From positions 18,972,001 through 19,036,000 of the forward strand of contig NC_087245.1 in NCBI RefSeq assembly GCF_037042905.1: a stretch of 64,000 nucleotides of DNA, read 5' to 3'. Origin of the DNA: Lytechinus pictus (Eukaryota). Both the position numbers and the translations under genes were made by a program. Position 1 is the first letter of the stretch. Each line of letters begins with the position of its first letter. The notes under the pieces were generated by a model. The model did not search any database and was not told the origin of the DNA. It worked only from the letters and a program-made list of their open reading frames with translations. Shown here in pieces: positions 3,200-58,356 of the stretch.

Positions 3200-5477
3200 G
3201 GGCATTTTCACGGTAACTAACGTTACACGGCACAATTTTGCACACCTTTCATTGTGTGTATCTCTAAAACAACATATGATGGGAGTTTGCTTTTGATAGA
3301 GTTGATAAAGTGAACCTTGCTGAATACTCTGATACTAAGTTTTTCAATGTAACCACATTTGTTACGCATCAGCAAGCAAAATTGTGTCGGTAACTGACAT
3401 TACGCAAAAAGGGCATGCAATTTCAGGGTATTCAGTAAAATTGAAATATCTCATGTCCCTGAGTAGATAGAGTAATAATTTGAATGTGTAAATATCCCTT
3501 CATTACTAGGTTAAGATGTGTCAAAATATTAAATAATTTGTTTTTGTGTTTTGAGGGCTATGATAATTTTTCCACGACCATGCTGGTAACTGACATTATG
3601 GTAACTGACGTTACACTTAATTTGCCATAGAGATAACACATGGAAGTCAAATATGTGGAATCATTGCATTGTATCTTCTGTGCAGGGCTTCACATGAAAG
3701 TGAGCTTGATGTGGAAGTATACCTGAGTTTCTGGGAACATTTCAATGAATTTTTTTTTTCTTTTTCTTAATTCCTTTTCTTTGATTTGAACATTTTATTA
3801 TTACTTATCAGTAACTGACATTACAAATTAACATTTACCAGTACCATATGTTTTCCAAAGGCATAATTTTCTTGGTACTTATATATAAGGCTTTTTAAAA
3901 TCATAAAAGTTTCATAATATTTCACATTTTAAATCATCAAAAGATAAGAAGAGGATAAGGGGGAGGTCATTGCAGCTACATGTATTCCTATAGTAATTTG
4001 ATATTGCATTGATTACACATGGATTTTTCTGACTATACACCCATTTACATATATTCATTAGTTTTATATTGACTTTTTAAACCTTTTCCTTCTCCAACTT
4101 CCCCCTCCCCTAAAAAAAAAGGCAAAATGAATAAGGGTCTCCTCCCATAGGCTACCCCTTCCCCCAAATCTCATGTAGCCATGCAGTTTTACTGCTTTAT
4201 ATTCTGGTCAGTGCAAGTAATGCTTGTTCATATCTGTCGGATTTACATTTTCTTCATAATTTTTTTAATCATTCTCTTTGCCAATTTCTTTTTTAAGCTG
4301 TCAACTAAAAATAAATTCCAGCTTCTAAACTGAAACTGAACTATTTGTAAATTAGAAAAAAACACCACAGTTTTAGTAGATCCATGCAACGTTGATCAGA
4401 ACTGTCAAATTTCACCCTTCATCTATACTTGTAAACCAAAAACAAAAATTATATCACACATCTACACAACTAACGGGTCTAAAAACCAGGAATTTACTTT
4501 TAGCTTGGCCGTGCTCAAAAGAATCCTAGAAACTGAAAAAGGGGCCCTGGAAACCCCCTTTCATCACAATGTTAAGCATATTAAATGTTGCAGATTTAGG
4601 CAGTAGGTTGGAAAAAGTACCCCTCCCCCGAAAATAAAATATATATTTGTCTGATACAAACAACTACATGTAGGTACTTGGTAAGTACATGTACATATGC
4701 AATTTCACAGTATTTTTTTTGCCTGATGGGAACGCAACTTCCTTCATAATTTTATGTAGTATTCCTTGTGAACGATACCTTTTAAAAGTCAATACCAAGC
4801 TCCTTTTGGTGTGATTTAACTAAGTGAAAGACTTAAATAACAAGTATACAATATTTCTTCACCATAAAATTTACCACATTAGCATATCACTATTGCTAAC
4901 CAACGTTTTATCATGGTAACTGACATTACATTTTCCACTTGGTAACTGACGTTACACATATTCAATGGTACCCTATGGCTTGATTGTTCATTGATTATTT
5001 TTAATTTTGGTGTAGAAGGGAGGGGTGTTACCTAAGGAGGAAATCTACCAAGTTTCATATAATATATCCTCTTTTCTGGGAAATGAGAAAAAAAAGTTCA
5101 TGTTTTTGGTAACTGACGTTACATACCATATTACATACTTCATCAATATATTTTAAACAGATAAATGAATTACTGGTGTTTCTTTCTATGGGATTTTATA
5201 AAGTGTTATTGTAGCAAACTAAATCTCAGGGGAAAGCATCATGATCAAACCTGTTCTTTAAAAATCTGTCAAAACAAAATATGTATCAATATACAATTTT
5301 TAACACTAATTTGTATCCATATTTTTTGGTGGCCATTTTGAAATAGAAAATGGTTGCCAGAGTCAGAAAAAAAATTGTCCCAGAAACTTCAGGTCTTGTA
5401 TTATTAAAAACATAAAGCATTTGACATGAATATCAATTTGATTTGTTTGCCTGTGTCCATCAGTGGTGAAAATGCCC
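3200..5477. mobile_element. Non-autonomous Sola2-like DNA transposon (element S1)
   Basis: 12-bp TIR GGGCATTTTCAC...GTGAAAATGCCC. 4-bp TSD TTAG at 3196-3199 and 5478-5481. Eight copies of GTAACTGAC(G/A)TTAC, two with one mismatch, at 3213, 3390, 3586, 3601, 3811, 4916, 4942 and 5109. No ORF. Superfamily inferred from GGG termini, 4-bp TSD and shared architecture with the element at 55782. Confidence 0.85.
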
Positions 5478-8400
5478 TTAGGGGTGTTCTATATCAGCCT
5501 GATTTTTCAAATTTTCCCACTTTTCCTAATCCAATACTAACCCAACAATAGAAGTTCAGGATTAGACTGAATGTCTAATCATGAAGGCAAAGACAGAATG
5601 TGCAAAGAAAGAATGTGCAGTTTTTAATTGGTCTCAAAATTACAATCCAACCAATGTAAATGTTGTTTTTCAAATAAAGTTGCAATATTTAGCAAATTAC
5701 TCACATATTTCACAGGTGAAGATGGGATGGTTTGGCTTGGGATTATTTACTCATGAAACCAGACGAATGAATATTGTCCAACAAAATTATGTGCACAGCA
5801 TGCATGCTGTATGGCCCCAAAGTCACTCACATTCCATGCTCAGGCAAGGATTGCCCCATTCAGGATGATCAAAACATTACAGATTTGCTTGAATCAAACT
5901 TTTTCTCTAAATCAAGCAAACTTAGACTGATGGAGAACCAACTCTTGAGAAAAGAAAATTTGTTTGCGGTAAGAAGCCTGGAAGGCTCTCCTCTCTTGAG
6001 ATTATGGAAGAAAAGTCAAACAGCCAACCTACATCTTGGTAGATTCAACAGCTTTAAGGAACATATCTAAAAAAACGTCACAATATGAAATTAAAATTCT
6101 CCACTGATTAATAAGATTAGAACTAAAATGCAATTTCCTTGAAATATCCACCTAAAGAGAAGATGGGGAAAAGCCCACAAGTGAGAAGAAATGACGGTCA
6201 TCAAGACTCAAATTGGGATAATTCAAACATTACATCACCACTCAGTTTGTAAGAGAACAAAATGCTTTCTTTAGTGTAAACCTATAAAACTAGGTACATG
6301 TTCAATCTGGAGGTTTGGAGGGCTGTGTATGCAACAGCAAGTCGAAAAACAATTTTGCTTCAATGATTTCTAATTATAAAATCACTTCCATCAGCCTCAA
6401 TATCACCATCCCCCTCCTTCTTGGCTGTTTTCATCTTTGTTTCTACTTGTCTGCTTCTCATGTTTCTCTCTCTTTCTCTCGTTTAAATCAATACTCAGGC
6501 AACATCTATCATGAGAACATACATGCAATTGAAATATGATATAAGCTGAACATGAACTCACACTTTGAAGAACTTTTTTTTTTTACCAAAGCTCAGCTTC
6601 ATAAAGAAAACATGCAAGACAGGAAGGGTGGTATGTTTTCTTCACTCCTACACACTAACTACTTCACTATTAAATTGTTCTACAAATTCTATATTGTCTT
6701 GAGATAAAATAAAAATATATGGAATGTCAAGGTTGTACTGAATAATTTCCTAACTTTCAGGAAACTCTTCTATTTTATCCACATACCAATTTGCAGCACA
6801 TTTATATTTATAACTTTATAAATTTATAGTTCCCCCCCTGAAAACCATCTTCTTGTCCAGACAAACCCAGATCGTAAATACACCTTTTTTATTACGATCA
6901 ACCTTAGTAATCACCATGATTGGAATTTAAAAGAAAATATGAAAGGATGCAAACCTGTTTTGAACTACACATGTATTAAAATCCAGATTTTTTTCCAATA
7001 AATGGGAAATATTAACATATACCCTTAACCATTCCTCACTGCAACTAAACAAGTATCAAAAGCCTGATTTTTCAGTCTTCAAATAGAAGCATATATGTAT
7101 CCTAAATCATTTTGCGTGACAGCCTGACTTTGACTTCATATTAAAAAAAATAAAAAATAAAAAACCCACATTGGACCTTAAAACATACGTGTGGTGTTAA
7201 AGTGGCCTGGATATAGGTCAAGTGTATGGATAACCCAATGTCACATGGGTGTATTTTTACCTTTAAGTGACAATGCCTGTATCAATTAACCTTTGGGTAT
7301 TACATGTCTGGAGTCAACAGGCACATCCCTACACCTGGTATGCAAATATATGCTAGACAGGTGAATCTTAGGGGACCGTTCTCACTGCCAGTACTCCACA
7401 GAGATTGTCAAGTAAGCATTATGCTACGGTGAAGTGCGGAATCATCTCCCAACATCAGAGTATTAGACATTTACGTAGGATATAGGATCCAGTATATGTT
7501 GCAAATAATTTTGTTGGAAGGAAAGCTATGCTCAAGCCCCCCCCCCCCTTCCCCCCAAATTGAAAATAATAAATTAAAACTGGTGATCATGTGCAATTCA
7601 ATCGGGTACAATACAGTGTATATATTATAGAGGTATAAACTGTCATAATATGTATTATTTTTTTCTAGTTAAGAGTCAAGTAATAGAAAACCATAAATAT
7701 CATGATTTGATATAATTCACATATGAAAATTCTGGTTAAGATAATGGTACAACAAGGATCTCAACATCTTGACAGGGTCTTGCGTAGGCCTACTTAAAAA
7801 AAATCTAATCTCTTAACTTTATAGAGGCATATCATTAAAAAATTAAATATGAAATTAAAATCTTTTCCAATTTCTAAATCCATATAATTCAAATATTGTT
7901 CATGTAAAATACACATTAATCTAAATGTTTTTGCATGTGTGCAGTGACTGTTCACATCAATTTTTCTTTAAATCTGCCAACAGAGGGCTCACTTTGACTT
8001 CAATCTATGAGGGAGACCACAACTTCATTTGACACCAGTCCTAGATGACTTTTGAAGGCTCCTTTTCATATGAAATATTTCATCTAATGAATTTACAGAG
8101 GATATGCTTTCTCATTGGAAAAAGAGCATTTTTTAGTTTGTTGGCTTAAATGAACAGATTTTTATTAACAATATTTATTAAGGTTTTGAAGATTTCAAAA
8201 CCATTAACCACAAATACTGTTCATTAACCACATAATACTGTGCAATTTGTAGGCAAGGGGAGAGGCATAGCAAATGCATTAAAACAACAGTATTTAGCAA
8301 TAGGTACCCCTGCTTAACCATATAGAAACACATTACAAAAACTGATGATAAAAATGGGTCTTGTACACTAAAAGCACTTCTCTGCCATATTTGGTAATAT

Positions 8401-11400
8401 ATAGAGATAGTTTCTCCTTCAAAAGAAGCAAGAATTGGGGCATTTATTGTTTATTGCCAGACAGCACAATGGAATTAGGCCCATTTTATCATAAAAATAA
8501 TCAAGAGGATGAAAATATCACCTTCAACAAAAGACATCATGCCATGAATCAAGCGACCGATCTCATTCTAAAAAGTCACAAGTGCAAGCATACAACTGTT
8601 TGGAGAAAGACCTAATAAATAACCGAGCAGAAATAAATTGACTTTGTGTTAAGACAGGATGAAATCGATAGCTTGGCCTCTGATTCTGTCAGAAAATATG
8701 TACACTTAACTCACAAATGACTACATTTCAATTAATTTTGTAGTGTGTGTTAAACATAGAATTTGAAGATTTTTTTTCTTTCAAATAAGTAATGACCCTT
8801 GTTACATTCAATTGTTCTACCCCCTTGTAAAAAATGTGATATTGCAATTCTAGCATTACTTCTCTACTGTGAAATTGACATTATCAAATACCGGTAATTT
8901 TACTATCATAATTCATTTAGTATAATTTATCTATCCTTTTCAATACCTGGCATTCATTGATAATGAAGATGAAAATCATCATATAGCAGCAACTTCATAA
9001 TTCCACGAAAACATGTTTAATGGGAAAATATCGTGAACCGAGGCGAAGGATTCCCATTTTCTCTCTAAATTCATAGATTATTATAATACATCATTCAGCC
9101 AGATCTGGTACTCCATTTATAGCTAATTTCTTCCCAATTTTGCCCCCTTTTTATGAATGGGCCAAGACAAATGAGACAGAAAGTGCAAAGGGGTTCGCTC
9201 TGTACTCGTCTGACATCGCCATCGGCGTAAATGATGGGCAAATAAAATTGGGAAAACGACATTGCCAGGATAAGAAAATGGGTTGTGTTATGACCGTACA
9301 AGATACGAAAATAAACTCATGATACTGTCTGATTTTTTTTTTCTTTCATTTTCCCCCCTTTTTTTTTAAACTCAGAAGGGCGATGTCCTATGAGGCTCAT
9401 GAGGTATTCGGTTGGGTGGGTAGCAGAGATGAGAGAAAGAAAGCGATGAAGAGACAGAGAGAGAGAGAAGATGGAGGAAAGTTCATGTGAACCCATAGCC
9501 ACTATAATTGTAGCCATCTTTACATAGACTCTCTAAACAGGCTCTGAATTATATGATTTACTGAGAGGAACCTAGGGGGAAAATTGCAGATAAGAGGCCA
9601 GATATGAAAAAAAATGTTTATTTCTCATACAAAAATATCCTACAGCATCTTCATCACAGTTCCTATGTACATTCAATTAATTTTCAATCAAAATTTCAAT
9701 AGTATACTGGTTATGTTTCTATGTTACTGATTCTGAAATAGCTTGTTTTTTGTTTTCTTCAAAAGGGAAATAACGATTAATTCCCACTAGAGGTTATATA
9801 AATCTTACTGAAAACAGTTTTTCATAGTTTCTAAAGAATTTCTTATTATTTTGAATTAAAAAAGGTCTTAAATAAAAACAGAATAAAGAGAAGAGATAAA
9901 TGATTAAATCTATTGAATAAAATAAATATCGAAGATACAGTAAAAATGCAGTTCATTGCTCTCTAACTTTATTACTCTTGTTGACCTTAACCAAGTATTA
10001 AGCCTTCCCAAGAACGCAGTATTTGGTGGATTAAACGTATCAGCAATTCTACAAATCTTATCCTATCTCAAAAAGATTTGTACCGATAAGGATTAAACTC
10101 TGTGTCATTAAACTTGCTCATATCCTCTGGAACTAATGATTTCTTCCCTTTCTCTAGTCATAGAGTAAGACATTCATGTTCTTCAAAAAACATAATGTTA
10201 TCAGCAAAAAAACCCTCTCTATTAAAATAATATTAAATGTTCTTTAGTCAAACAAACGACTTATGCACACTTTTATGTGCATCATGGTCAAAATATATGG
10301 ACAAAATCTGAATATAATTATCTGTACTGGGTGTTTTAAATCATGCACAATTGTCTACATGATGTATCTGTGCAGTATCACAGCAAATTGTACCAAGTGC
10401 CAAAATCGGCCCCATTCCCAACAGGCTCTAGTAAACAATTTGCTGCGCAATAAATTGAATAATGATCATAATTTTCTTGTATACCACCTTTCTTCAATAT
10501 AAAACAAAGGGAAGTAACATGCAATGAAAATAAATCCAGGTTACTCGGTTTTGTAGAACAAAGTGCAGGACTAATGATAACAAAATTAATGACAGATACA
10601 CAATAATAATAAAACAATTACATTGGATGGGTTTTCCACATGGGATACCTAAAATCATTAAGGCTAATATGGCACAAATCATGATATTGGCCTTATCCTT
10701 GATATGTGCAATATTTACGGTAGCCATTACGTATCTTACTAAGCATTATTTTGGTTTGACCCAGGAATAATAGGTCCATTTGAAATGAACACAATCTAAA
10801 AATCGAATCCTGATTGAGATCTCCTTTCAATTAAAAAGAATTTTCAAAGAAAATTCTTCAGAATGACTTTTCAAATTGCGCCATTTTGAACATATCACAC
10901 TTGTGTTTTAAAAGGTGTTTAGTACAACAGAAGAAAATTGCTTGAAAGCGAAAATGGCTTTAACTTTACATCATTAACAACTACAGTAACAGAAGTGTTG
11001 ACTGGACTGTGCCTATATGTGACAGACAACTTTGTAAAATTCTTTATCCAATATCGTCTGAAAAAATGAGGCAATGTATGTGCATTCCTCTGAAAAACCT
11101 CATATAAGAGTTCTGTGTCATATCTATGATTTCATCTGAGACATGCCTTTATTTGTCCTCAATTTCAAATCACATGACAAAATTTTCTACATATTTTTAA
11201 AGGACTCTCGCCTCTTCTTCTTTCCTGTACTTCCCCCTCCAGAGTCCCGGCCAACTTCCCTCTCTCATTCTCACATCCTCTTCTTTTATCTGAAGAAGAC
11301 AAAACGAACAAAAACTTTGACATCAGGGCTCTAACTCGCCAATCTAAACAAAGTTTAAAATTAGCCCTATCGACCTTTAATCATGCGGGGATAGGGGGAG

Positions 11401-12309
11401 AAAGGGGCTGCACAAAGGGGTGACGATACACAGAAAAAAAAAGCAAAAAGATCAATTTTGTCACTTCAAACACGAAAATCTGACAAAGTTGAGCTGAATA
11501 AAGAGAGGAGAGAGGGAATACTAAGCTGCTATTTCCTGTACAACTGATTCATCACGGAACACACGACTCTGCAAAATTATCTGCCTCATAAAATTAAAAT
11601 CAGTGACATTGAGGTTCTAGTCTACAACTAGACGTGGACTAGACATGGACTTGAAACATACATATGATTCTATACATGAAAAGTACTTGATGTCTAAAAT
11701 AACACAGCTTTGGACAGAAAGGCATATCAAGAGGTAGAAAGGTGTTGTGGAAATTTAAAAAAGTTTTTAAAAAATGATTGATAACTAGTTACTTTTTGAG
11801 GACTTTATTAACTTAAATTACATTTTCATAATAAAAAGTCACCAACTTGAGACTTATTCTCAGGACAATATTGCCCCTCCAACACCTAGTCTATTTTTCC
11901 ACACAATTCCTGGATCTGGAGTAATTCTTCTCTACAGGACTTACAATGCTCAAATGATCCATATAAAGTCTGAATCGATGAGACTATGCCAGGATCAAGG
12001 GGAGGAGGTAGACAAGGGACACCCTCCTTACTTGGATAAAATGATGTAAGACTACACAATCCGATCTACCATCCCCAAACTGATACAAAAATGGAGAATG
12101 ATATGGGCATTCCACCAAAATACTGTAAATACCAGGCCCAAATATCATAGAGACTCACAAATATCCTTACAACTTTGCAGTATCGGTGAGTACCATGGAA
12201 ATCTTAAATTTGTTCTGGTACTGAGCCCTGTATGATTACAACAATGGTGAAGTTTTAAGTTAATGGTCAGTTTATAAAATAGGCCCCGGAATCATTCATA
12301 TCATTACAA

Positions 12310-12581
12310 TTTTCTTTTCCAATCTTGAACCATTCCAATTCTTGAGACCGTCATATCGTTCTGTGCAAACCTTGCGTGTGACCTGCGGGTAACTATTTTT
12401 GCTACCAGCAGGTCGCCCGCATTGACAATATCCAACACGTATCGCACATGCAGTTGCCCGCAGAAGCGCACGCAAGTCTGATTTGCACGCAGAAAAGTTT
12501 TGAACATGCTCAAAACGTTGTTGATGGTGAGTTTCAAGCAATCACCAGCAAGGCTTACACGGAACGATGTGACAGGGCCTT
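12310..12581. mobile_element. CpG-rich MITE fragment (one terminus visible)
   Basis: Abrupt CpG-rich block ending GGAACGATGTGACAGGGCCT, with an internal inverted echo GTCATATCGTTC at ~12350. The other terminus was not found. Confidence 0.45.
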
Positions 12582-13663
12582 AACATGATTTTTTCATGTA
12601 TTCTATTGAATCGTACCTACAAAATTAAAGGTGAAAGAATGGTCTTTTCTTTTATTTCATTTATTGATTCTATATGCAAATGAGATGATGAGAGGGATGA
12701 AATTTGTTACAGGGGCAGTTTTGGATATCGTGCACAATTTTTTGAAGAATTTGCAAGTAACCCCCTCAAATCACAAATTTTTAAAGCAATAAAAGAAATA
12801 AAAATAAATATAGCATGAAAAAGGGTTAAATTTACCACATACACTAAGAAATTTCAAATGATTGTTATGTGGTTGAAAATGCAACAAGATTATTTATAAA
12901 AATATCACTTTTCACTTTTGTGGATTTTTTTTACGGGCATCCATCACAATTAAACCAAACTGCTTCCATTATAAACGATTCATTCTCACAATAAAATAAC
13001 GCTTACCGGTACAAACTGGTGCTGGTAGAAAGCAGCTTAACCGTTTAATCTTGATTTTCAGGAGTGGTTCTAGTTATGCTTCCACATGTAACATCAACAT
13101 TATGAACTATTAAAATGTGTACTTTTTATCGCAGCGCACATGTCAGAGATATGACGGGGACCGGATATTTGGCTTTAGATGGGTGCCTTACAATCTTAAA
13201 CTGTAGGCCCTAATCTTAAAAACAGGATTAAAAGGAGAACAAAATAAATAGCAATGTTGAAATCTTTAAACCATGATTTAAAATTTTGAAAAATCCCAAG
13301 GATCCATTCTATATTTAGGATAAAAGAAAGCAGATTTTGTCTTATTTTAATGCCAAAGACGTCATACCACTTCAAGGAAATTACACCAGTGCAATACGTC
13401 TTTTCATCAACCAACCTATCCTCCAGAAAAAAGTTGAACTTAACGTACTTTCTTGGTATTTGTCGAGTCAAGGGTCAAATAACTTCCTACACTAACTTGA
13501 TATTAATCATATCATGCCCAAGAATATGAATTATTCAGTTCATGGACAATACACATTCATAATCTACCTTCAACTTCAAACAGTAGATACAAAATGGTAC
13601 CCCCCACCTCTCCCCATCATCCACTGCCATTAATATTTCTTGTTCAAAATCTTGTACACGTAT

Positions 13664-14161
13664 ATGCTTTTCACACTGCATTTCCTTAACTCCATACTAT
13701 CCTTTAACCCCAGACTATCCTTAAACCCATACTATCTTTCTTTTTTTGCACTGTCTTTCTTAACCCCATAACCCCATAAAATATTTGCTTAGACAGGGTT
13801 AAGGCCTTAACTCTGGACTATCGCACAGCTCATGAATATTGATGATTTTGCCACACAGAACGAGATTAACATGCAACATGCAACTTCTGTGATTGGCTAA
13901 TACTTGGCCCCACTCTTCCTTAGCCCGGTTTCGTTTCACACTGCAGCTCTTAGCACCACAATTAGCTGGCTAACCCTGCTTTTTTGCAGGGCCAGATAGT
14001 ACTGTACTATTTACCATGCTAGCCCTCTTTGCTAAAATGTAGTGTGAAAACGAAGTGGGCTAAGCTTAACCCCTGGAAATTGGTGGGGCTAAGACCCCCC
14101 CCCCCCCTTAGCCCCACCAATTTCCCAGGGTTAAGGAAAATATATATAGTGTGAAAAGCAT
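13664..14161. mobile_element. MITE (Harbinger/Tourist-like)
   Basis: TIR ATGCTTTTCACACT...AGTGTGAAAAGCAT, extended by TTTCCTTAAC...GTTAAGGAAA. Internal repeats of CTTAACCCC/CTTAGCCCC and TTTCACACTGCA. Confidence 0.8.
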
Positions 14162-15197: not shown

Positions 15198-15460
15198 CTG
15201 GGCCCGTCTTACAAAGAGTTACGATTGTTACGATCAATCTCAAGTATATGGAAATCCATCAATGTCATAATTTTTTTCTTTAGGAAATTTGCTCAATGTC
15301 CTTTGAAAACAAAGAGAAGCATACTTAATTGTCAAGAAAACATTGAATGTATGAATATACATCATTTCTAGAAAATATTTTGAACAAGCATGTATTTTTT
15401 TATGTTGACGTTGCTGGCTTTCCATAGTTGCAATTGATTGGATCAATCACAACTCTTTTA
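15198..15460. mobile_element. MITE with long imperfect TIRs, right end eroded
   Basis: AAAGAGTTACGATTG...GATCAATC at the left pairs with GATTGGATCAATCACAACTCTTT at the right. A related half-copy lies at ~31448-31508. Confidence 0.6.
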
Positions 15461-44311: not shown

Positions 44312-44398
44312 CTGGATACTGTAGCCGAGTTACAAGTGGAGACTAGACACCTTCACCAGCCCTTCCTACTTGCTTTGACTGACCACTTCCAATTCAAT
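44312..44398 (-). other. Candidate non-coding (5'UTR or lncRNA) exon, 87 nt
   Basis: Minus strand has strong acceptor TTTTTCTTTTTAAATGCAG and strong donor CAG|GTGAGT. GC is higher than the flanks. Stop codons in all three frames. Confidence 0.6.
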
Positions 44399-47300: not shown

Positions 47301-48737
47301 TCAATTACCGAAACACGGTTTCGACCTTGTATACGTGAAGGGCAATCATGATTTGTTCGACCTAGCCCATGGCAACACAACAACGCCTAATAACAGTTCA
47401 ACAATGGTGGCCTTTGATGTTCAGTCGGTCTGCATTTCATTCCCAGCACCGGTAATTGTTTTTTCGTAATATGGCCTTAGGATTAATCACCAGAGCACGT
47501 TCAAAAACAAGCACCTATTAAAATATGTTATTACAAATAAAAAAGAATTCTGGTTGATGTTTTGTGTATCATCACTCTAAATACCCAAGTTAAAATAAAG
47601 TTTGAAAATACAAGATTCAATATTTAGAATACATGTACATTCACATATTGACCAATCATTACAATATGTCACTAAAGACTAAAATAAACTGAAAACAAAA
47701 CTACTGAAAACGAATTAAGAACTTAAGAATCAGGGAATAATTTTGCTTTACAAAGTTTAATAGCATTTTTGGTCAGAAGAGAAAAGCTCTCAACTAAGTA
47801 ATGTACAGTTCTACATTGTATGTAAAAATATGCAATACAAAAGACTTCATGCATAGCAGTCTTTAAAAAATGTGGAGCAAATTGCAATGCGATACCAGGA
47901 AAATCATTCCTGGAGAATTAATAAAAATGTTAATTCATGTTCAAATATATCACATAAACCTTGTGAGCCAATTCAGGAAGTTGAATATAAAGAAGATCCA
48001 GGTAATATTAAGTATCTGAAATTCATGATATATAATCATAAAGAAATATTATCTACATTGAAAGTTTTTTATAAAACACATGACACTCACAAATTCAGAA
48101 GAAATAGCCCCCTCTACAGTTTTCCTACACACAAGCATGATGTATCATTGATTGTGTCTTGTTGTCAACAACAGGGCCAGGGTCTATTCCTCACACCTAC
48201 CTACCCTTTCCCCTTTCACTTGAAAACTTTCCTCTCACATACACCTTTTTGTTACTATTCATACTTTTACTCCCTCTTGCCTACCAAGTTTATACTACAT
48301 TATGATTTATAATAAAAAAGATTATTCTACATGTATGTATGCCCTACAATATATTTGTATTTTCTAATACACCCCACCCCCTTCGAATGGAAAAGCTACA
48401 TGTAAAGCCGAACTTTCCTTCTCATTTCACTTTTAAATTAATTAACAAGTATTTAGAGTAGGGTAGAGACATCCAATGCCTTTATTTACCTTTCAATTCA
48501 TCAATATACATGTACATGTGTAATGTTTCTTTTAAAGTATATGCCCATCTTTCCTATAGTTTTCTTCCACTAAACTTGCCTTCATTCCCTGTTATGTTGT
48601 GTGGCATCATTTCTTGTCTTTTGTCTTATGTTGTTCTGTCTTAAGTATCTCTTTTAATAGTACGTGCATATGATATTGTAAATAATAATATATAATAATT
48701 TTGAGTATTTGTATATCACACATCCATTTCATTATTA

Positions 48738-48917
48738 GGTGCTCAAGGGGCCACTACCGTGTATTACCACGGCAAAGCTAGTCTACCATTCGGGTGCTCA
48801 CAGATTTTTTAGGAATTACTTCCTGTCGGTACCCATTAACCTCACCTGGGTTGAAAGCAGCATATTGTGGATCAATTTCTTACTGAAGAAAATTATGCCA
48901 TGGCTGGGATTTGAATG
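48738..48917 (-). mobile_element. tRNA-derived SINE relic
   Basis: Minus strand has B-box remnant TTCAAATCCC and core AACCCAGGTGAGGTTAATGGGTACC. Confidence 0.55.
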
Positions 48918-49007
48918 TGTTATTATTTCATGTACATTTTTCAATTTAGAAAAAAAAGTATTTAAAAAATCCCTTCATCACTTTTTGAGGTAAGTAAAAT
49001 GTGAATT

Positions 49008-50481
49008 AGTTTTCAGTTTCAGTTTTCAGTTTTCAGTTTAGTTTTATTTCCATTATTCATATACAGACATTAACATGCTTGACATGAGTATAACATAATT
49101 ATATTGAGTTGAAATAAATCGTTATTGAGACAGAAGTTATACGCAATAAGAATTTAAATCAGTGAAAAATGGAGGGGCCTAAGTTGAAAGCAGAGCTTGT
49201 GAGTTATAGGCCCCAATGGAAGGAGGTGATAAGACATAAGGCTATATAGCTATTAAAAATAACAAGGTAAAAGAAAAGCAAAAGTTTATGAACCAATTGG
49301 TTTAATCACATCTGTGGCACGCCCTGGAAGGAAAGTAATGTTTTAAAGGGAGGTATGAAGGTAAAATGGAGCTGCTGAAAGGTTTAGATATCTACTGCTG
49401 CCTGAACTGCATAATCATTCAAAAAAGTATGTTTAAGTTTACGTTTGAATATAAACAATGAATTGGAGTCTGAAATGTCTTTGGATAGTCCGTTCCAGTA
49501 CTTCGGTCCTGAGAAAGTAATTGTTTTCTGAGCAAAGGTTGTTCGAGTCAGTGGTAAATGATAAAATGTACTTTGTCGAGTTGCGTATGAATGAATTACA
49601 TTTCGTTTAACAAATAATAAGGTGACAATGGCTGGTAATTCATTTGTGGATAGCTGGAACATAAAAATTCCTAAATTATATCTATATAAGTCTGAGATTT
49701 TGAGAAGTTGATTTCCATGAAAGTAACGACTTGTATGGGAAAGAAAACCAGCATTGTTTATGTTTCTAACCGCACGTTTTTGAATGACAAACAACCTATG
49801 TAGTTGAGTTTTATTGCTATTACCCCAAGCAAGAATACCGTAATTGAGATAGGGCAAAATCAAAGTATTGTAAAGAGATAATAAAATTTTTTGGGGTAGA
49901 TCATGTTTAAGTTTGTTTAAAATGCCTGTGTTTCTAGCCGTTAATGTACAAAGATAATTAATATGTGATTCCCACGATAGTTTGCTATCGATATAAATTC
50001 CAAGAAATTTTGTGGAATCGACTTTAGTTAAATTTGTGTTAGCAATCAATATATCACCGGGTAAAGATTTGATAGTATTACTGAACAACATATAATGAGT
50101 TTTGTTAACATTTAAAGATAGCTTATTTGCATTAATCCAGGCTTGGACCATTTTCAATTCCTCGTTCAGGATTTCAAGGAGGCTGGTGGGGTTACGGTGG
50201 GAGAAAAAAATATTAGAATCGTCTGCAAAAAGAATAAACGACAAATTATCAGAAGAATGTTGAAAATCATTAATATACAAAATAAACAATAGGGGGCCTA
50301 ATAAGGAACCTTGTGGAACACCACATGATACTAATCTCGGGTAAGAGTCCTGTCCATTAATACTAACGAATTGTTTTCTGTCGGAAAGATAATTTCCAAA
50401 CCACTCCAAGACCTTTCCTCGAATCCCATAATGGGATAATTTATGCAGTAAAATATTATGATTGATAGTATCAAAGGCCTT
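49008..50481 (-). mobile_element. 5'-truncated LINE of the CR1/L2/Crack group
   Basis: RT ORF followed by a ~370-bp 3'UTR containing a GGGGCCTA...TAGGCCCC stem-loop (49174-49214) and an (AAACTG[A])n tandem tail at 49008-49044. Homology starts abruptly at KAFDT. No TSD seen. Confidence 0.93.
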
Positions 50482-50511
50482 ACACGAGTCTGGAGTTGTT
50501 GTTTTTTTCAC
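49384..50511 (-). CDS. LINE ORF2 fragment: reverse transcriptase C-terminal half plus C-terminal domain; 5'-truncated and not expected to be functional
   Basis: Motifs KAFDTINH..LL.KL..YGIRG, GVPQGSLLGPLLF, FADD, LSLNVNKT and FLGIYID. The first ~10 residues come from flanking DNA. Confidence 0.85.
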   Translation of the reverse strand: MKKTTTPDSCKAFDTINHNILLHKLSHYGIRGKVLEWFGNYLSDRKQFVSINGQDSYPRLVSCGVPQGSLLGPLLFILYINDFQHSSDNLSFILFADDSNIFFSHRNPTSLLEILNEELKMVQAWINANKLSLNVNKTHYMLFSNTIKSLPGDILIANTNLTKVDSTKFLGIYIDSKLSWESHINYLCTLTARNTGILNKLKHDLPQKILLSLYNTLILPYLNYGILAWGNSNKTQLHRLFVIQKRAVRNINNAGFLSHTSRYFHGNQLLKISDLYRYNLGIFMFQLSTNELPAIVTLLFVKRNVIHSYATRQSTFYHLPLTRTTFAQKTITFSGPKYWNGLSKDISDSNSLFIFKRKLKHTFLNDYAVQAAVDI

Positions 50512-50846
50512 AAGAAAGGAATATCATTATATATATTTCTTTTTCAAACAAAATAAACTTCTTATTAACTGCTCAAGAAAGGAACTCACAAGTATGTATA
50601 TCCCCAAAGTGCTTTGGGTGTTGGATAGTCAGTTGTAATATAAATCATTGATCATACCTGTCACATTGCAAGTATTTAGCTGACCAAACTCAAAAGATTC
50701 TTGGTGTCATCGCATCTAATCAAGCATACATCTATCAAACTAATATCGCTCATTGTTCTTGAAAGATACCTTAGAAGTGCGCTTCCATGATTTTCAAGAG
50801 CCTATATTAACAAGCTGTGCAAATGATTTCCATTCAAAAATCTTAC

Positions 50847-50916
50847 CTTAAACATGAAACTATCCGGGTGTTGGCAGATGCACTTTTAGAATTGAAAGTG
50901 GCATGGTGGTTTTCCT
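50847..50916 (-). other. Candidate 70-nt exon containing a short upstream ORF
   Basis: Minus strand acceptor CACATTTTCCCACTTTCAG and donor AAG|GTAAGA. Internal ACCACCATG opens MPLSILKVHLPTPG*. Confidence 0.4.
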
Positions 50917-51274
50917 CTGAAAGTGGGAAAATGTGGTTTGCTTTAAAAACATTACAGTAACTCCATCTGAAAGCAATATGAAGGTCTTTATAATATATTA
51001 AGGCTACATGCCTCCATGAATATTCTCTGATGCAAAAATGAAAATGCCTTGTAGAAATGAATTCAATGGTTAATTTTAACAAATATTGTCATTTTAAACA
51101 CGATTTGTTAATTCATTTTCATCAGCATAAAACATTCAAAGCAAGAGCAAATAATGGAACATTGATGATCATATTCAGATGTGTATTTTTAGTACATATT
51201 AAAAATGGTGCATGCACAGCAATGTACATGTATCTACAAAACTAATTCCAAGCCTTGAGAAATGCTGACACTTA

Positions 51275-51439
51275 TACCTTGGTCACATTTGCTCTACGGC
51301 GGCCGTACGGCGAGTCGAAAAAAAACAGCCGTTTTATTCATTTTTATTCAAACCACCTACATGGAGCTAGTACAAAAATGTTAAAACGGCTGTTTTCGAC
51401 TCGCCGTACGGCCACCGTAGAGCAAATGTGACAGTGGTA
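51275..51439. mobile_element. Hairpin MITE (Tourist/PIF-Harbinger-like)
   Basis: TTA TSD (51272-74, 51440-42). Near-perfect arms of ~60-70 bp: GTCACATTTGCTCTACGG(C/T)GGCCGTACGGCGAGTCGAAAA..CAGCCGTTTTA. Confidence 0.92.
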
Positions 51440-52163
51440 TTAACCTCCAAAATACAACAGATCAATGACCTAGGATGCCATCTGCCCCATATAATTCAAT
51501 GTCAGTTCATGGCCACACTAAAATGCTTCTTCTCAATCTATTTATAAGCTCCATTGCACCAATGGGTAGCAGCCTACCATAGCCATGGGCACATTTGGGG
51601 GGCACCCATGCCCCCTTCATGGGTTAAAAAATCCCAACTAATGACCCTGAACCATGAAAATTACCATCAACAAAGGGATAAAGCTGGAGAATGGTAATAA
51701 AGTGTTCATTAAAAAGCTCTCCTTTGATAACATACATGTATGATATCACAAGTAACTATCACGCTGCCGCTCCAGTCCGAAAGAAATGAGAGATGCATGT
51801 CCTCGGTATTCAAGTGATGGGTATATCAACTTGAATCTTATACTGAAGAAGAAACCATGGATTGGCAATGAATATTAATAATAATGAGGGAGAGAGGTTG
51901 GGTTGGAGTAAAGATTGATGCTGCTTTTATTTAACAAAAAAAAAACAGAACCTGAAATTTCCACTAATAAAAACAAGGACTGTATATGTATAAAAAATTA
52001 AATGTCTAAGCTGTGAAATTATATGGAATCGGCAATGATGATCTCTTCATCTTAAGCAATGCAGGTAAGCAATTAAAGTTAGGAGGTTCCATTTAGCATG
52101 CCAAGCTATGTAGAGAGTTAAGTGGTAAAAAAAAATGAATTTAAGTGTACAAAGAAAAATTAA

Positions 52164-52742
52164 AGGTCAAGTCCACCCCAGAAAAATGTTGAATTGAATA
52201 AATAGAGAAAATTCAAACAAGCATTATGCTGAAAATTTCATCAAAATCGGATGTAAAGTTTCGCTTATTTTTCACAAAACAGCGATATGCACAACTCAGT
52301 GAAATGCAAATGAGACAGTCGATGATGTCCCTCACTCATTATTTCTTTTGTTTTTTATTGTTTGAATTATACAATATTTCATTTTTTACAGATTTGACAA
52401 AAAGGACCAACTTGATTGAACCATATAGTATTAAACAATGCTAATTACGCATGTTCAGGGAGGAATTAATCCTTGTTTCACATGACAACAGAGAGAAAAT
52501 TTGAATATTTCATATTTCACATAATAAAATACAAAAGAAATAGTGAGTGAGTGATGTCATCAGTCTCCTCATTTGCATACCGACAAGGATGTGAATATAA
52601 CTGTTTTTTTTAATTACGCAAAACTGTAAAATGTCATAACTATCTTATTTTACATCCGATTTTGATGAAATTTTCAGCGTTACGCTTGTTGGATTTTTCC
52701 CTTTTTATTCGAATCAACTTTTTGTTGTGGTGGACTTGTCCT
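52164..52742. mobile_element. Kolobok-like MITE
   Basis: TTAA TSD (52160-63, 52743-46). TIR AGGTCAAGTCCACC...GGTGGACTTGTCCT. Long subterminal inverted repeats (GAAAATTTCATCAAAATCGGATGTAAA). Confidence 0.92.
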
Positions 52743-53049
52743 TTAAGTATTCCAGGGCTAGGCATAGTACTGGGTTACATGAAAGTACAGGGTTCAGAAA
52801 ACTACATGTAATACAGTAACACAAGCATAGTTTCACCGTGACCTGAAATGTGGTAGCATGGATTCTAGTAGGATCCACGGTGGTAGTAACATTCTGGTGT
52901 GTGAATAATTATATGTTGACATACTGGAATTTTGTTTTTTGTCAATAATGGATTAACTTTCACAAGGTACATGGATTAAACAATTTCCCATTCAGTCCCT
53001 GCTGCTGCACCCCCCCCCCACTCTTTTAACCCTTGCACATAGTGCTTTA

Positions 53050-53510
53050 GAGGCTGTTCTCACTACGTTCCTAAAACTAGTTTACTGGAAACTAGTTTAA
53101 CGCGTAGTGAGAACGGTCGAAGCGGTCTTGGAAGCGATCTTGGAAGCGATCTTCCAAACCAGTTTAGAAAACCACCTCGCGATGTAGTTTTCAAGATCGC
53201 TTTGCCTCGTTAAACTGGTTTTGTCGTAAGTGAGGACACAACCGTTCTTCGGGAAGCGATCTTCGCACATTTTGAGCCCGCTACTCCACACGACAGGTGT
53301 AGAATGCCTATGCTGCGGTTTCGAATTTCGCGCGAAACGTGTCACCCCACTGAGAGCGTTTCCACAGCAACAAGACCGCTTTACGAGAAGTGATTTTGAA
53401 AACCACTTTCATGCGATCAAGTGGGAACGCTAGCAAAGCGATCTTCCAAAGTGGTTTCCTGAATCGGTTTCCAGTAAACTAGTTTTAGAAAGCGTAATGA
53501 GAGCGGCCTC
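53050..53510 (-). mobile_element. MITE family C, copy 2
   Basis: TIR GAGGCTGTTCTCACTACG...CGTAATGAGAGCGGCCTC. Reverse-complement homologue of 19800-20186. Confidence 0.88.
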
Positions 53511-54483
53511 CAAGACAACTTTCACTCAGAGAGAATTAAATGTTTAAAGTCAGATGATGATTAATTCATGGACCTATAGGTCCATGATTAACTGAAGGCT
53601 GTTAGCTTTAATTTAAAAAGAGGTGTTGGGATCCTGCAGTCTGTAATGCTCCAAACAATAAATTTCAAGAGCCAGGATAAAGGACTAACAATTCTTGGTC
53701 TCTTGTTTAAATTCATACATGTTCATGAAATGTATGCACTGTCAAATTTCTGTTGAAGGAAATACAAACTGCATCAAAAGTAATACTCCTTCCAGATAAT
53801 TCCAAGAATCTGGATGAAATATCTCAACTCAAACTTTCAAACATCCCTTTATCTTTTGTTTGGTGTCAGAGCAACCATAATCACGTCTGATCCAGTTTCA
53901 CTGTGAATTTATCTGAAATTTGAGTGTGGAAATGGATTGCAGAAGTCAGTCAGCAATTAAATGGCCAGATTTCCTCGCTAAACCGCTAGTTTCCTTTAGT
54001 ACGTGCCAAGACAGGATAGGGTTTATTGCGGGACAACTCTGATACAGGGCGGAAATCACAGAGGCAGTCCGTTTGATTTCAACTTAGCAGGTCAGATTTT
54101 AAAGGGAGATGTAAAAAAGGCTTGCTTCTCAAGTTTGATGTATCTATCCAATATCATTTCGGTCCATCGTAGATTCAAATGAAGTATGCGCATGATACAT
54201 GTATGTTTGAAGGAAAGGCTACATGATTACACAAACTGCTTCTGTTTATTTAGTGAATGGATTTGAGCTGGCTTGGAGGAGAGGGTGCAACCACCAAACA
54301 TGTAGGCCTATAGTATTTCTGTACAGCTCCTACATCTTTCTGGTAAATGCTGCACAACAGGCTCAAACTGCATATGATTATAGTACTATTTTCAATCTGT
54401 TCATATATGTTGCATCAGCTGATAAACCTTTCAGTTTTACCATTAGTATTGTATTATGCCAGTTTATAGACATAAGAGGTAAT

Positions 54484-54902
54484 AGGTGGTTTCAGACCGC
54501 CTCAAAGTTCGTCAGTTCCAGGTATTTTGGCAGTGTGAAAGCAAATTACGCATAATCTCCCCGAAAGAAAATACCCGCTAAATAGTAGGTACTTGTCAAA
54601 ATTACAAGAACTTTCGCTGGAATTTTTCCAGGGTCGCAGGTATTTAGGCAGTGTGAAAGCAAATTACAGGAACTTTAAGCCCAGCGTGTAGTTGTGCGCG
54701 GCGCCGTAGGTGGCTGCTGAGCTAGCGATTTTTAATCTCGCGCCTTGCTTACATATCAGACCATACTGCGCATGCTTGTAACTTCAGGAACTTATCCCGA
54801 AGGGTATAGTTCGGGGTGGTGCGAATGCAGGAATTTTTTTAGCCTGAAAAAGTTCTCGTAATTTAACAGGGATTCTTGTGATCGAAGCGTTTGAAACCAC
54901 CT
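54484..54902 (-). mobile_element. MITE family B, copy 2
   Basis: TIR AGGTGGTTTCAGACCGC...GCGTTTGAAACCACCT, with flanks AAT/CAT. Reverse complement of 38568-39033 with small deletions. Confidence 0.9.
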
Positions 54903-55068
54903 CATGAAAGAAAGCATATCTTGGATGAGCACAAAAGGCCAGGAACAATCTGTCCAAGATAAATAGAGTGACAAGTGAGGTAGAACTTGTTAAAATTAAA
55001 ATTGACTAAAGATGGGGCTTGAGCAATTTAAATAGCAAGTTTACTTACAAAAGAAGTGGGTCATGTTT

Positions 55069-55468
55069 AGGCGGTGCTGCACCATCCTGAGTTTGCTCAA
55101 TCTCGAGATTTTAGCCCGATCGGCACTCTTCGCGATTAATCTCGAGATTCAAGAAACCCCGTCTCCACCATTGCAAGAAGTGCGATTCCTGCTCGAGCGA
55201 GGCATCGATGCATTATGGTCTGACGCCGTGAATAAATAATCCTGAGTGCGTCTGCACCTGCGAATTAGCGCGATAATTCGTAAAATAGCGCGCTATTTTG
55301 CTAATAATCCCAAGTTGACTTGGGATTGCAATCTCGAGATTAATCCTACGTACTAGCGCGATAATTGCGTCTCCATTACAAATAATCTTGAGATTGTTCA
55401 GATCGGGATAATTTGCCGGATCAGAAATAGCGCGCTAATTTTAAAACTCGGGATGGTGCAGATGGCCC
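55069..55468. mobile_element. MITE family A, copy 2 (inverted relative to copy 1)
   Basis: CTGCACCATCCTGAGTTT...AAACTCGGGATGGTGCAG. Near-identical reverse complement of 1-391. Confidence 0.92.
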
Positions 55469-55781
55469 GTGTGTGACATCAAACAGAAGTGTGATTTTGA
55501 AAGTTTTATTTCATTTTGAAATTCCTGTGAATTTCAAAATGAAATTTAACTTTCAAAATCATATTAGTGATATCTAACATTTTCAGATTGTTAACTCATT
55601 AAGTCAAGATTTGTCATAAGAATGGCCCATTTGATGAAATTTTAAGCATCTTAGGGGTCTGATTTTTCTTTATCTGTTCAAAATGAAATTACATACAGGC
55701 TGGAATACCCCTTTTATGTAACTTGAGCACTCTACAGAGTGGATTTGGTGCCGTAAAAATCTCATTATTGTTATTATATAT

Positions 55782-58356
55782 GGGCAATTCCATGGAAAAT
55801 GTTCACTTTCGAGAAAAAATGAAGTTTCAGATTTCACTTAAGCAGTCAAATTTTCTTAAAAAGTAATCTATAAAGTTTCAATTTCCAATAGAAAAATCAC
55901 AATATTGATAAAATTTTGTGTTTTTTTCCATCATCAAAAAAATAAAATAATAAATTGCAAAATCTAAAAAATGTGGCTATTTTTAAACAATTCATCTTTC
56001 CTGTCTCTACTAAAAGCAAATAAGGTCCCACAGGTCTCTTTTAACTTTTGTATCGATGATTAATGTTTAAATCAACAGAAAATCATTGTTATATTTCATG
56101 CCATTCATCAATTTTAGAGAAATCGATCTTCAGATTAATGTGATTTCTTTACCATTATCAGTGTCATGTCCGTTACGTTTTTCACTTAAAGTTTTCACAG
56201 CTTACAGGAAATTTGTCTGAAGGTACTGCAGATTCAGATTCTATGTTAGAATTAAACCCCCTACCATGTGTAGCAATCATTTTCCCTGACCACTTCTCAT
56301 TTTCATAAAAATGGCGTAACGGACATGACAATTCGCGTAACGGACATGACACCTAATATATGACAAAAGGCAGCATTCACAAAAACAAAATATTAGGCTC
56401 AGTGTCACAGACTGTGGTCAGTCTCAATTGCTTGAGGATAGCTGGATGTAATAACTCCTAGAATCTGCATGTCATTCTAGCTATTTTTAGAAGTTGGTAA
56501 ATGATGAAAGTTCAGCTCTTGTTCTGGTATATTTTTCTGAGAATTAACGGTATGCCACATAATATTAGGATAAGATGCAGCTAAATCTGGCAACATACTC
56601 AGATCACAATCTGCATCATTTGTGTTTGAACAATAATTGATTATCTTTAGGTGTTTGCACTGACAGTTTGGAGCATGATAAAACTCCAACTTGTGAATTC
56701 ATGAGATCTTTGATGACATTGCTTCAAAGTATCTGACTTTCACCAACCCTCAACTTCTTCAGTGATGGCACTGGCTCACATTTAAAACAAGTTTGTAAAT
56801 ATTCAGATATCTGTGTTACATGATGTAGCTCTATGAATCCATGAATCTACAGTGGCACTTCTTCATATCACAAAGCAAAGAGGCTGTGGAAGGAATGTGG
56901 CGCGATCAATAAATTATGTCATCATAGTATTTTGGTCAGCCATAATCATGATTTGAATGATGTATCTTCGTTTGTACACAAGCAGCGCAGACAATACAAT
57001 GAAATTAGATACAGCCACATTTGTCAGCAAGCAAGATCGTAAGATTTAGTACATCCAAGATTTGATGAAAGGATGATTATACCAAGGATCTTTATTTTGA
57101 ATGAAAAAAATCTCAGAAGCGATTTACAAACATTCCGATTACCTTATAACTCGTACATAATCGATAATGAAAGACTGGTTTCCAGGTACTGCTATTAAAA
57201 TTTAAAATACTTTTTAATATCATTTTTTTAATCTTGAAATTGACATTAATACTAGTACATATTCTTTATCATAAAATACATTTTATAATACAGGTGTATG
57301 TTCATCTTGGATTTAATCAGGTCTGGTACATTTTGTTTTCTTCTCACAAAAAATCTGATTTGCTCTTCTCAGTGTGCCTATGGTACTATTAAAGCATTGT
57401 ATTCTATATAAAATTATCATGTGGGCTATAGCTATTAAATTAATAATACCTGCCAAAAGTGCCAATAATATCTACATTTTTTTCTTAAGAATGTTAGTAA
57501 AGGTACTTTGCTGTTACATATAAATTACATTCATTATTCATATTTCTTTCATTTTGCAACTAAGAAGTGCTGATGAAGTTCACTTCGGAAGGGTGTCATG
57601 TCCGTTACGCTAGTGTATATTGTCAAATAGTAAGCCATGAATAAAAAATAATCTTTACTATCAACTTTTTCTCTTTTAATTAGATGTGGCGGATGGTAGT
57701 AACTGGAAAATAATCATTAACTGTTGTTAACTGGTGTAAAAGAAATTTTTCCAAATATTTTTTTGTTTTATAAATATTGTACGCAAAGCCCCCCTCTCAA
57801 ATTGCAAAATAATAGGAGATATTACAGATTACCAGTTATGATGTGTGTCTCTAACCTCTAGCCTTAACAAGTAACCAATTAGACTTGTACCATATCTTGT
57901 AATAAAATAATTATATACGCTTACAAAAAGTGGACGAAACTGTCATGTCCGTTACGCTTCATGTGTCATGTCCGTTACGCTACATTTTGAGCTATGAATA
58001 CAGAATGCACTGTAAAACTTTTGTTAAACACCATTTTATGGATAGAGCATGATCTTAAGGTTAAATTAACACCAGCGTCAGGTGCATGCAATCTAAGAAT
58101 TCACAGGAATTTTGATAAGCAATAGGAGGTAAAAATGCTTCGTCCATTTCGTGTCATGTCCGTTACGCTGACAAAGAGTGCAATTTCTCCGCAACTTTTC
58201 AACGAAACGATTTGAAATTTCATGTGTATGTAACTGATACTTAATTGTGTCTGATAAGCTCAGTAGCAATTATCAAAAGACTGCTAATTCTACTGTATAA
58301 ACCTTTGAATTACAAACATTTGTCTGAACGTCATGTCCGTTACGCTGGAATTGCCC
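55782..58356 (+). mobile_element. Non-autonomous Sola2-like DNA transposon (element S2) with a decayed transposase core
   Basis: 11-bp TIR GGGCAATTCCA...TGGAATTGCCC. 4-bp TSD ATAT (55778-81, 58357-60). Eight identical GTCATGTCCGTTACG motifs at 56163, 56316(rev), 56337(rev), 57595, 57942, 57965, 58153 and 58330. Transposase-like motifs inside. Confidence 0.9.
56510..56910 (+). pseudogene. Decayed Sola2-type DDD transposase fragment
   Basis: Ordered, frameshifted motifs: YFSEN* (56530-47, cf. DFSENY), *DKMQ (cf. QDEIQ), FFSDGTGSHLKQ (56755-90, cf. FSDGxxxQFK) and WHFFISQSKEAVEG (56853-94, cf. WxFFATSHGKGAVDG). Reference motifs are recalled from memory, not searched. Confidence 0.7.

Follow-up and report, generated by a model that had tools for sequence, protein, structure and literature searches.

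Two non-autonomous, Sola2-like cut-and-paste transposons, S1 (2278 bp; 3200-5477, plus strand, five-box end to the left) and S2 (2575 bp; 55782-58356, minus strand, five-box end to the right), lie in the 64-kb stretch of Lytechinus pictus DNA analyzed here (the window), and the arms of both carry a 14-bp box in several copies at shared distances from the termini. We propose, with a probability of about 0.7, that these boxes are putative transposase-binding sites with their spacing under selection. The comparison was extended from the two elements to the copies of their families, to a third lineage in the same genome and to autonomous relatives in other animal phyla, and box clusters were found to recur with a period of ~183 bp counted from the nearer terminus.

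Exact matches to the box GTAACKGACRTKAC number 14 in the window against 0 expected, and all of them lie within S1 or S2; when up to two mismatches are allowed the count rises to 18, of which 16 fall within the two elements, i.e., eight per element. Several copies of a short motif thus occupy both arms of S1 and S2, and exact matches are absent from the flanks, as is characteristic of subterminal repeats. An earlier reading of the DNA from its letters alone (the sequence-only reading) had placed eight boxes in each element, and our scan found them at the same places; the ends it had assigned also proved right, with terminal inverted repeats GGGCATTTTCAC in S1 and GGGCAATTCCA in S2 (related GGGCA ends) and duplications TTAG and ATAT. 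Its offsets were reproduced on recomputation: 13, 190, 386, 401 and 611 bp from the five-box end and 355, 522 and 548 bp from the other end in S1, and 13, 190, 378, 401 and 748 bp versus 381, 534 and 555 bp in S2. The shared geometry claimed on this basis stands for the five-box end, where 13, 190 and 401 are identical, but not in the same sense for the three-box end, where the offsets differ by 26, 12 and 7 bp and the agreement is approximate only.

The spacers between the boxes are without detectable similarity, as had been suspected by eye. The best BLAST E-value between S1 and S2 spacers in either orientation was 0.34, identity in register was 30% versus 27 +/- 3% at other registers, and z-scores of global alignments ranged from -1.2 to +1.0; a search for other short words at matching positions of the two elements found none. 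S1 and S2 are linked indirectly to elements of the type of A1, an autonomous relative introduced below, through a common box core, the likeness of their terminal repeats (GGGCA / GGGTCA) and the geometry. In the majority boxes of nine element sets (the third lineage counting as two), A3, C8, T10 and A12 are common to all nine, and G0, A2, G9, T11 and C13 are present in eight. The general form can be written GTAAC-NNAC-GTTAC, with the right half kept across phyla. At the positions where families differ (5-6, with 9 and 11 in addition for S2), the letters are uniform across all eight or nine boxes of a family and co-vary across both arms.

The S1 and S2 families and the drift of their spacers

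The S1 copy in the window belongs to an older, CpG-type subfamily of a large family, for which we obtained 1294 first-look candidates in the 812-Mb genome and at least 28 full-length copies at 86-89% identity; a generic pattern of terminal repeat plus box gave 491 matches, and none in a reversed control. A set of 27 S1-family copies is ~98% identical to its own majority, and carries nine boxes, all of them GTAACTGACATTAC; the majority offsets are 13, 192, 387, 402 and 612 bp from one end and 357, 524, 550 and 570 bp from the other. The 5+3 layout described in the sequence-only reading is therefore correct for this copy of S1 but not for its family, which is 5+4, the ninth box having decayed in the window copy. 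Similarly, the G/A alternation reported at position 10 of the S1 motif is seen, but as a CpG state and its decay: the older subfamily, with the palindrome-like box GTAACTGACGTTAC, has GACGTTAC, which decays to CA or TG with both products present, and the younger subfamily has A in all nine boxes. All S1 boxes share one orientation, and an open reading frame (ORF) check of S1 revealed no coding potential. Because 24 of 27 further copies have identical 4-bp flanks, including AGCT, ACCT and CGAT, the duplication of the S1 family is 4 bp and not 3 bp long; most duplications are ATAT, TTAT, ATAA, AAAT or TTAG, and ATCG also occurs along with the three just named.

For S2, about 38 full-length copies were scored, 21 in a young subfamily (97-99% identity) and 17 in an older one (91-94%), and ~110 ends were counted genome-wide. 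S2 itself is a member of the young subfamily, a very young non-autonomous family with copies ~99% identical; it contains no ORF of 100 amino acids (aa) or more and no coding potential. At its three-box end, two of the three boxes are flipped. An autonomous copy was sought by pairing ~100 listed five-box ends with ~100 three-box ends and reading copies longer than 2.6 kb, and every long copy that was read turned out to be the 2.57-kb element with unrelated nested insertions. One such insertion (L032:1578-5397) is a 3.8-kb non-coding, foldback-like element with a 4-bp overlap, whose ends GGGTCAATCCACGTCAAATCA resemble the terminal repeats of S2, of the third lineage and of A1 and which lacks GTAAC boxes; possibly this is one more relative, equipped with a different type of box. 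S2-like sequence is also far commoner in the DNA runs of another organism (runs X10, X16) than in those of the source species, and differs there at many fixed positions, so the S2 family would be either common to related species or transferred between them.

The two families allow the behavior of boxes, arrays and spacers to be compared. Between the S2 subfamilies, fixed substitutions fall in none of the 112 box columns versus 61 in the 2426 others, and private substitutions hit box columns once, where ~13 would be expected, versus 277 times elsewhere; box 1 is partly fixed by the way in which copies were selected, but the remaining seven boxes give the same result. Fixed indel events between the subfamilies number 15, and every one lies in the central third, outside both arrays. 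The S2-like contigs from runs of two other organisms follow the same pattern: their listed indels are without exception central, and the 40 substitutions listed all fall outside the boxes. Decayed S1-family copies (n = 27) accumulate 0.27 indel events per substitution, and at that rate the probability that an exact length is kept under neutrality is ~0.005 for the 163-bp spacer and the same for the 197-bp interval between boxes 2 and 4, on the assumption of at least one substitution per site, enough to erase spacer similarity. Plain common descent had been named at the outset as the explanation to beat; spacer identity at background, a neutral probability of ~0.005 per spacer and the sparing of S2 boxes and arrays argue for more than that, and selection appears to maintain the spacing as such.

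Autonomous relatives and the ~183-bp lattice

A search for more families with the pattern GGGCA-N8-GTAAC-N168-178-GTAAC, S1 and S2 excluded, returned chance matches only; other lineages, with different terminal repeats, were found instead by way of palindromic double boxes. The third lineage in the L. pictus genome, detected in this manner, combines a terminal repeat GGGTCATTCCATG with the box GTAACTCGCGTTAC (variant TCGC). One copy has boxes at 13, 192, 379 and 394 bp; a complete copy of 2282 bp with duplication TTAT has boxes at 13, 201 and 390 bp from one end and at 362, 528, 548 and 568 bp from the other. Identity between the two is 71% and is confined to the first 400 bp. Compared with S1 and S2, the spacers of both score at or close to background (z of 3 or less) and are not alignable, with a faint similarity between the arms of S1 and the third lineage (z 2-3). 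The complete copy (L049+L054) also contains an internal 207-bp inverted repeat (475-681 / 859-1065, 80% identity). A locus with GTAACTTTAGTTAC on contig C4 (L052:780-880; G000:C4:21846447-21846547) does not resemble a transposon arm: it shares the GTAAC...GTTAC half-sites but looks like an unrelated tandem array, being short, of period ~21 bp and containing GGTAACTTTAGTTACCATTAT.

When mapped, the box variant GTAACNTACGTTAC proved to be clustered at two loci, one on contig C5 and one on contig C15, each with about eleven boxes. The first of these is A1 (G000:C5:25118456-25124376), an element of 5921 bp with duplication TATA, imperfect ends GGCTCAAACCCAC and GGGTCAAAACCAG and 11 boxes, located 397, 587, 744, 758, 1117, 1139 and 1509 bp from its left end and 191, 551, 573 and 956 bp from its right end; its limits were fixed where the C5 and C15 copies stop matching. 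A1 has a single open frame of 960 codons, intact, which gives 874 aa from the first ATG. The protein has no match in Pfam, hence no Tc1/mariner domain. Its homologues number in the hundreds (about 400 found), are 800-880 aa long and unnamed throughout, and come from echinoderms, amphioxus and molluscs. Two identical A1 ORFs are present in what appear to be intact autonomous copies, and at least 19 paralogous ORFs without introns are intact in the genome. Among these paralogues, an ORF of ~877 aa, 58% identical to the A1 transposase, is present intact in eight copies (one of 870 and one of 852 aa), most of them with a GTAACATACGTTAC box ~830 bp downstream of the ORF, and this set is probably a currently active autonomous Sola2 family.

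The assignment to Sola2 draws on several features. Sola elements (Bao, Jurka and Kapitonov 2009, as cited in PMC3627910 and PMC10741241) have a DDD transposase and 4-bp duplications (PMC10741241, PMC3627910), which in Sola2 are AT-rich (PMC3627910); the duplications found here across lineages, TTAG, ATAT, TTAT, TATA and AAAT, are of this kind. In the A1 protein, three aspartates are invariant across 30 homologues, D487 (MDFAENY), D571 (WTD) and D613 (GHGKGPCDG), with the spacing D-84-D-42-D. Sola2_DFa-2 of Dictyostelium fasciculatum (PMC3627910 supplement) has LMDFKENI, WSDG and YHGKSDVD with D-87-D-43-D, i.e., the same blocks in the same order at close spacing, in a by-eye comparison with one published sequence. 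An AlphaFold2 model of the A1 protein (mean predicted local distance difference test score, pLDDT, 77.5) gave weak Foldseek matches, with a best E-value of 1e-3, nearly all of the top ones to RNase-H-like folds: PIWI, retroviral integrase core, RNase H2, terminase nuclease and Mos1. The 'Sola2-like' label of the sequence-only reading is thus supported by the AT-rich 4-bp duplications and by the MDFxEN, W[ST]D and HGKxxxD blocks of the autonomous relatives, read by eye against Sola2_DFa-2; we accept the Sola2 label for the A1 family on that comparison, and S1 and S2, which themselves encode nothing, are taken as Sola2 members by association.

Two other superfamilies were considered and rejected. 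The GGGC-type ends are reminiscent of PIF/Harbinger, but in place of the 3-bp TWA duplication of that superfamily we found 4-bp duplications including AGCT, ACCT, CGAT and ATCG. For Tc1/mariner elements with IR/DR (inverted repeat/direct repeat) ends, TA duplications and DD34E would be expected, and we found 4-bp duplications and no Tc1/mariner Pfam domain in the related transposase.

We then read the loci of four homologues from other species: Holothuria (sea cucumber), Branchiostoma (amphioxus), Mytilus (mussel) and Pinctada (pearl oyster). The Holothuria transposase is 55% identical to that of A1 in the region searched, and the alignable parts of the two elements are the ORF and ~35-bp islands at co-linear boxes only. 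The geometry is kept between elements whose transposases are just 42-55% identical. Offsets in other families are not random, the point on which the initial proposal had been left exposed: the end distances recur in the third lineage and in the five autonomous relatives, and these come from three animal phyla or more. As to box orientation, in the autonomous elements A1, Holothuria, Pinctada and Mytilus (L055+L051, L059, L061, L063) boxes near the terminus point one way and distal boxes the opposite way, so that each arm has a switch point; S1 is uniform and S2 mixed.

The remark that the 177-bp first spacing is close to a nucleosome repeat can be extended to a lattice. For 58 box clusters from 8 lineages, the best period was 182.5 bp (R = 0.73), and none of 500 simulations with free period reached this R (p < 0.002). 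A period of 187 bp had first been set on S1, S2, the third lineage and A1, and later data were tested at that fixed period: Holothuria and Branchiostoma gave p = 2e-4 with the same phase, and the molluscs p = 9e-4. Each lineage subgroup is significant alone. Lineages differ in the nodes that they fill, the non-autonomous families adding left-arm boxes at nodes 0 and 1, and almost every lineage has a pair of boxes ~550 and 570 bp from its right end. Lattice units within one element have no mutual similarity apart from the boxes, and the lattice is therefore not a recent tandem array.

Table 1. Features of S1 and S2 in the window, box positions in elements of other phyla (bp from the left or right end), nodes of the lattice (bp from the nearer terminus) and copies of the ~877-aa ORF.
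Feature	Position	Strand	Basis or remark
S1 target-site duplication TTAG	left 3196-3199, right 5478-5481		sequence read
S1 terminal inverted repeat GGGCATTTTCAC	left 3200-3211, right 5466-5477	+ (left)	sequence read
S1 box 1, offset 13, GTAACTAACGTTAC	3213-3226	+	box scan
S1 box 2, offset 190	3390-3403	+	box scan
S1 double box, offsets 386 and 401	3586-3614	+	box scan
S1 box 5, offset 611	3811-3824	+	box scan
S1 decayed ninth box	~4896-4909	+	intact in younger subfamily, 570 bp from right end; family majority
S1 double box, other arm, 548 and 522 bp from right end	4916-4955	+	box scan
S1 single box, 355 bp from right end	5109-5122	+	box scan
S2 target-site duplication ATAT	left 55778-55781, right 58357-58360		sequence read
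S2 terminal inverted repeat GGGCAATTCCA	55782-55792, other copy 58346-58356	+ (first copy)	sequence read
S2 single box, 381 bp from three-box end	56163-56176	-	box scan
S2 double box, 534 and 555 bp from three-box end	56316-56350	+	inverted copy of double box 57942-57978
S2 box 5, offset 748 from five-box end	57595-57608	-	box scan
S2 double box, offsets 401 and 378	57942-57978	-	box scan
S2 box 2, offset 190	58153-58166	-	box scan
S2 box 1, offset 13	58330-58343	-	box scan
Holothuria element, ends GGGTCAAAACCAC, duplication AAAT	left 396, 588, 756, 1141, 1318, 1490; right 191, 548, 570, 928
Branchiostoma element	left 391, 735, 752, 1114, 1277; right 549, 570, 702, 869
Mytilus element	left 379, 566, 722, 736, 1067, 1603; right 180, 537, 702		termini good to a few bp
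Pinctada element	left 173, 556, 727, 1059, 1078, 1425; right 191, 570, 725, 888		termini good to a few bp
Lattice nodes 0, 1, 2	13; 187 +/- 6; 383 +/- 14
Lattice nodes 3, 4, 5	563 +/- 21; 732 +/- 19; 910
Lattice nodes 6, 7, 8	1104; 1298; 1475
~877-aa ORF copies in G000	C20:3220914, C1:24448910, C5:48692427, C3:25850391, C2:8328892, C12:18531370, C7:29228260, C11:12815531

A single ORF in the whole window reaches 150 aa (49384-50511, minus strand, 375 aa); it matches the reverse-transcriptase family RVT_1 (E = 7e-24) and is thus a fragment of a retroelement.

Readings of the spacing

In the mechanism that we favor, a Sola2 transposase would bind the boxes through its DNA-binding part, and an autonomous paralogue would provide this protein in trans. 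The boxes sit on a ~183-bp lattice from each terminus, of which different lineages fill different nodes. Selection on elements that still transpose would keep the boxes and their distances, and the spacers would drift freely. The regular spacing would point to a higher-order assembly: several transposase units may bind along 0.4-1.5 kb per arm, with the intervening DNA looped or wrapped and the sites brought together, and the distances would be kept because several bound units must meet in one complex. The whole could be regarded as a multi-unit version of the two-site Sleeping Beauty ends. The variable letters, uniform within each family, may reflect co-evolution with a family-specific transposase, which would keep the families from mobilizing one another. 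Binding, the need for exact spacing, the looped architecture and any role of nucleosomes are what we infer from these comparisons.

Several observations weigh against selection on a transposase-binding array. Among the ~100 listed S2 ends and the paralogue loci, no cognate transposase for S1 or S2 was found, and at the genome loci checked none of the S1 or S2 ends lies near a transposase paralogue; moreover, the box variant of A1 differs from those of S1 and S2, and the Sola2 assignment depends on a by-eye comparison of motif blocks with a single published sequence. The spacing is not rigid, with three 1-bp indels between the two S1 subfamilies within the five-box array, node positions that scatter by 6-36 bp and a best period that varies from 176 to 187 bp between groups. 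Box orientation varies at the three-box end, and the lineages share ancestry and are for this reason not fully independent samples. Finally, there are MITEs (miniature inverted-repeat transposable elements) of 110-250 bp with two S1-type five-box ends, each consisting of the terminal repeat and one box only (L041:101-351, L042:101-276, L043:101-283, L045:101-211). Since these MITEs carry 4-bp duplications, a minimal end of terminal repeat plus one box suffices for movement, and the full array is not a strict requirement.

Of the other readings, the one that survives best attributes the period to chromatin: boxes one nucleosome repeat apart would all lie in the linkers of a phased array, or the transposase would read or set the phase, and the spacing would be selected through nucleosomes and not through direct protein-protein geometry. 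A period of 177-187 bp over up to nine nodes is indeed nucleosome-sized, spacer sequences that are free to vary would fit as well, and 26 spacers have a ~10-bp periodicity of AA/TT/AT/TA of 0.90 versus 0.63 +/- 0.09 after shuffling, a weak signal measured against mononucleotide shuffles only. However, the G+C profile around the boxes, examined as a composition test for nucleosome-favoring spacers, was flat; furthermore, the nucleosome repeats of sea urchins are reported as longer (>200 bp), and the phyla with a common lattice do not have a common repeat length. We thus consider selection through chromatin unlikely, and a role for nucleosomes possible but unsupported. The same low weight is given to the more specific proposal that Sola2 ends are laid out on a nucleosome-sized lattice and that a phased nucleosome array over 0.4-1.5 kb per arm either carries their transposition complex as it assembles or is established by it. 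If true, a eukaryotic transpososome would include chromatin as a structural component, and the design would predate the split of molluscs, echinoderms and chordates or would have spread among them.

A regulatory role is more doubtful still. Here, the boxes would bind a host factor, or the transposase as repressor or activator of its own promoter, and would have been carried into the derivatives. The left-arm boxes of autonomous elements do extend to ~120 bp before the start codon (in A1, box at 1509 and ATG at 1632), and subterminal sites double as regulatory sites elsewhere, e.g., in En/Spm. Yet the arm downstream of the gene is filled with boxes as well, and boxes adjoin the terminal repeat at offset 13 and are kept in non-coding families without a promoter; in addition, family-specific letters co-vary across both arms, and the MITEs retain exactly the terminal repeat and one box. 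Least probable, by a small step, is inheritance alone, according to which the arms began as tandem ~183-bp units with one box each, the boxes being retained for whatever reason and the spacing not yet having drifted: all lineages derive from a common ancestor, and the faint arm similarity between S1 and the third lineage agrees with this, but saturated spacers have kept their lengths to 0-2 bp against the neutral expectation given above, the fixed S2 indels avoid the arrays, the geometry has outlasted the divergence of the transposases, and unit-to-unit similarity is gone.

Two further ideas were dropped. A Myb-type site was considered, as TAACTG and TAACGG of S1 and S2 fit YAACKG, but the relatives carry TAACAT, TAACCT and TTGACT, among others. 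A helical phasing of the box distances was post hoc and inconsistent and is not claimed.

Known systems and significance

Transposase binding by several sites per end, as proposed here for the S1/S2/A1 group, has precedents. The group resembles Sola2 in its AT-rich 4-bp duplications, short terminal inverted repeats and lack of a Pfam domain, as well as in the ~870-aa protein of the autonomous relatives, which has three aspartate blocks with the spacing seen, by eye, in Sola2_DFa-2; in the literature that we could search, we found no description of internal box arrays or of a periodic arm architecture for Sola2. It shares with the IR/DR ends of Sleeping Beauty and other Tc1 elements more than one transposase-binding site per end, a long spacer and asymmetric ends, and for Sleeping Beauty the spacing between inner and outer repeats matters for transposition (PMC8151067). 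In contrast, IR/DR ends comprise two sites within ~230 bp and are associated with TA duplications and DD34E, whereas an arm in the present group can have as many as seven sites, spread along 1.5 kb on a lattice that repeats, and the superfamily is another one. hAT elements (Hermes, Ac, Tol2, Tag1) likewise have many short sites, asymmetric at the two ends, and needs far beyond the terminal repeats; in Hermes, an octamer reads asymmetric subterminal repeats by N-terminal BED domains (PMC10368747). The Hermes motifs are 4 bp long, crowded at the tips and irregular, unlike the boxes described here, which are 14 bp long, sparse and periodic.

Phage Mu, Tn7 and the TnpA arrays of En/Spm also have several sites per end that differ in number and arrangement between left and right, all within 100-300 bp and not on a nucleosome-sized lattice. 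Subterminal binding repeats are thus a known kind of feature, and it is the conserved, nucleosome-sized lattice that appears to be undescribed. The difference lies in the scale and regularity, with up to nine nodes in ~183-bp steps, and in the conservation across phyla.

Sola2 elements are widespread and, to our knowledge, have never been studied experimentally; we know of nothing on how their ends are recognized. The present analysis supplies a specific architecture, a conserved box core at fixed distances from both termini in at least three animal phyla. It is unusual that positions up to 1.5 kb from the tip are fixed while the spacers are scrambled, which points to a nucleoprotein complex that is large and ordered and in which nucleosomes may take part. 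Since Lytechinus pictus is a laboratory sea urchin, its apparently intact autonomous copies and the young S2 family would be at hand for assays of binding and of transposition, and perhaps for the making of a transposon tool.

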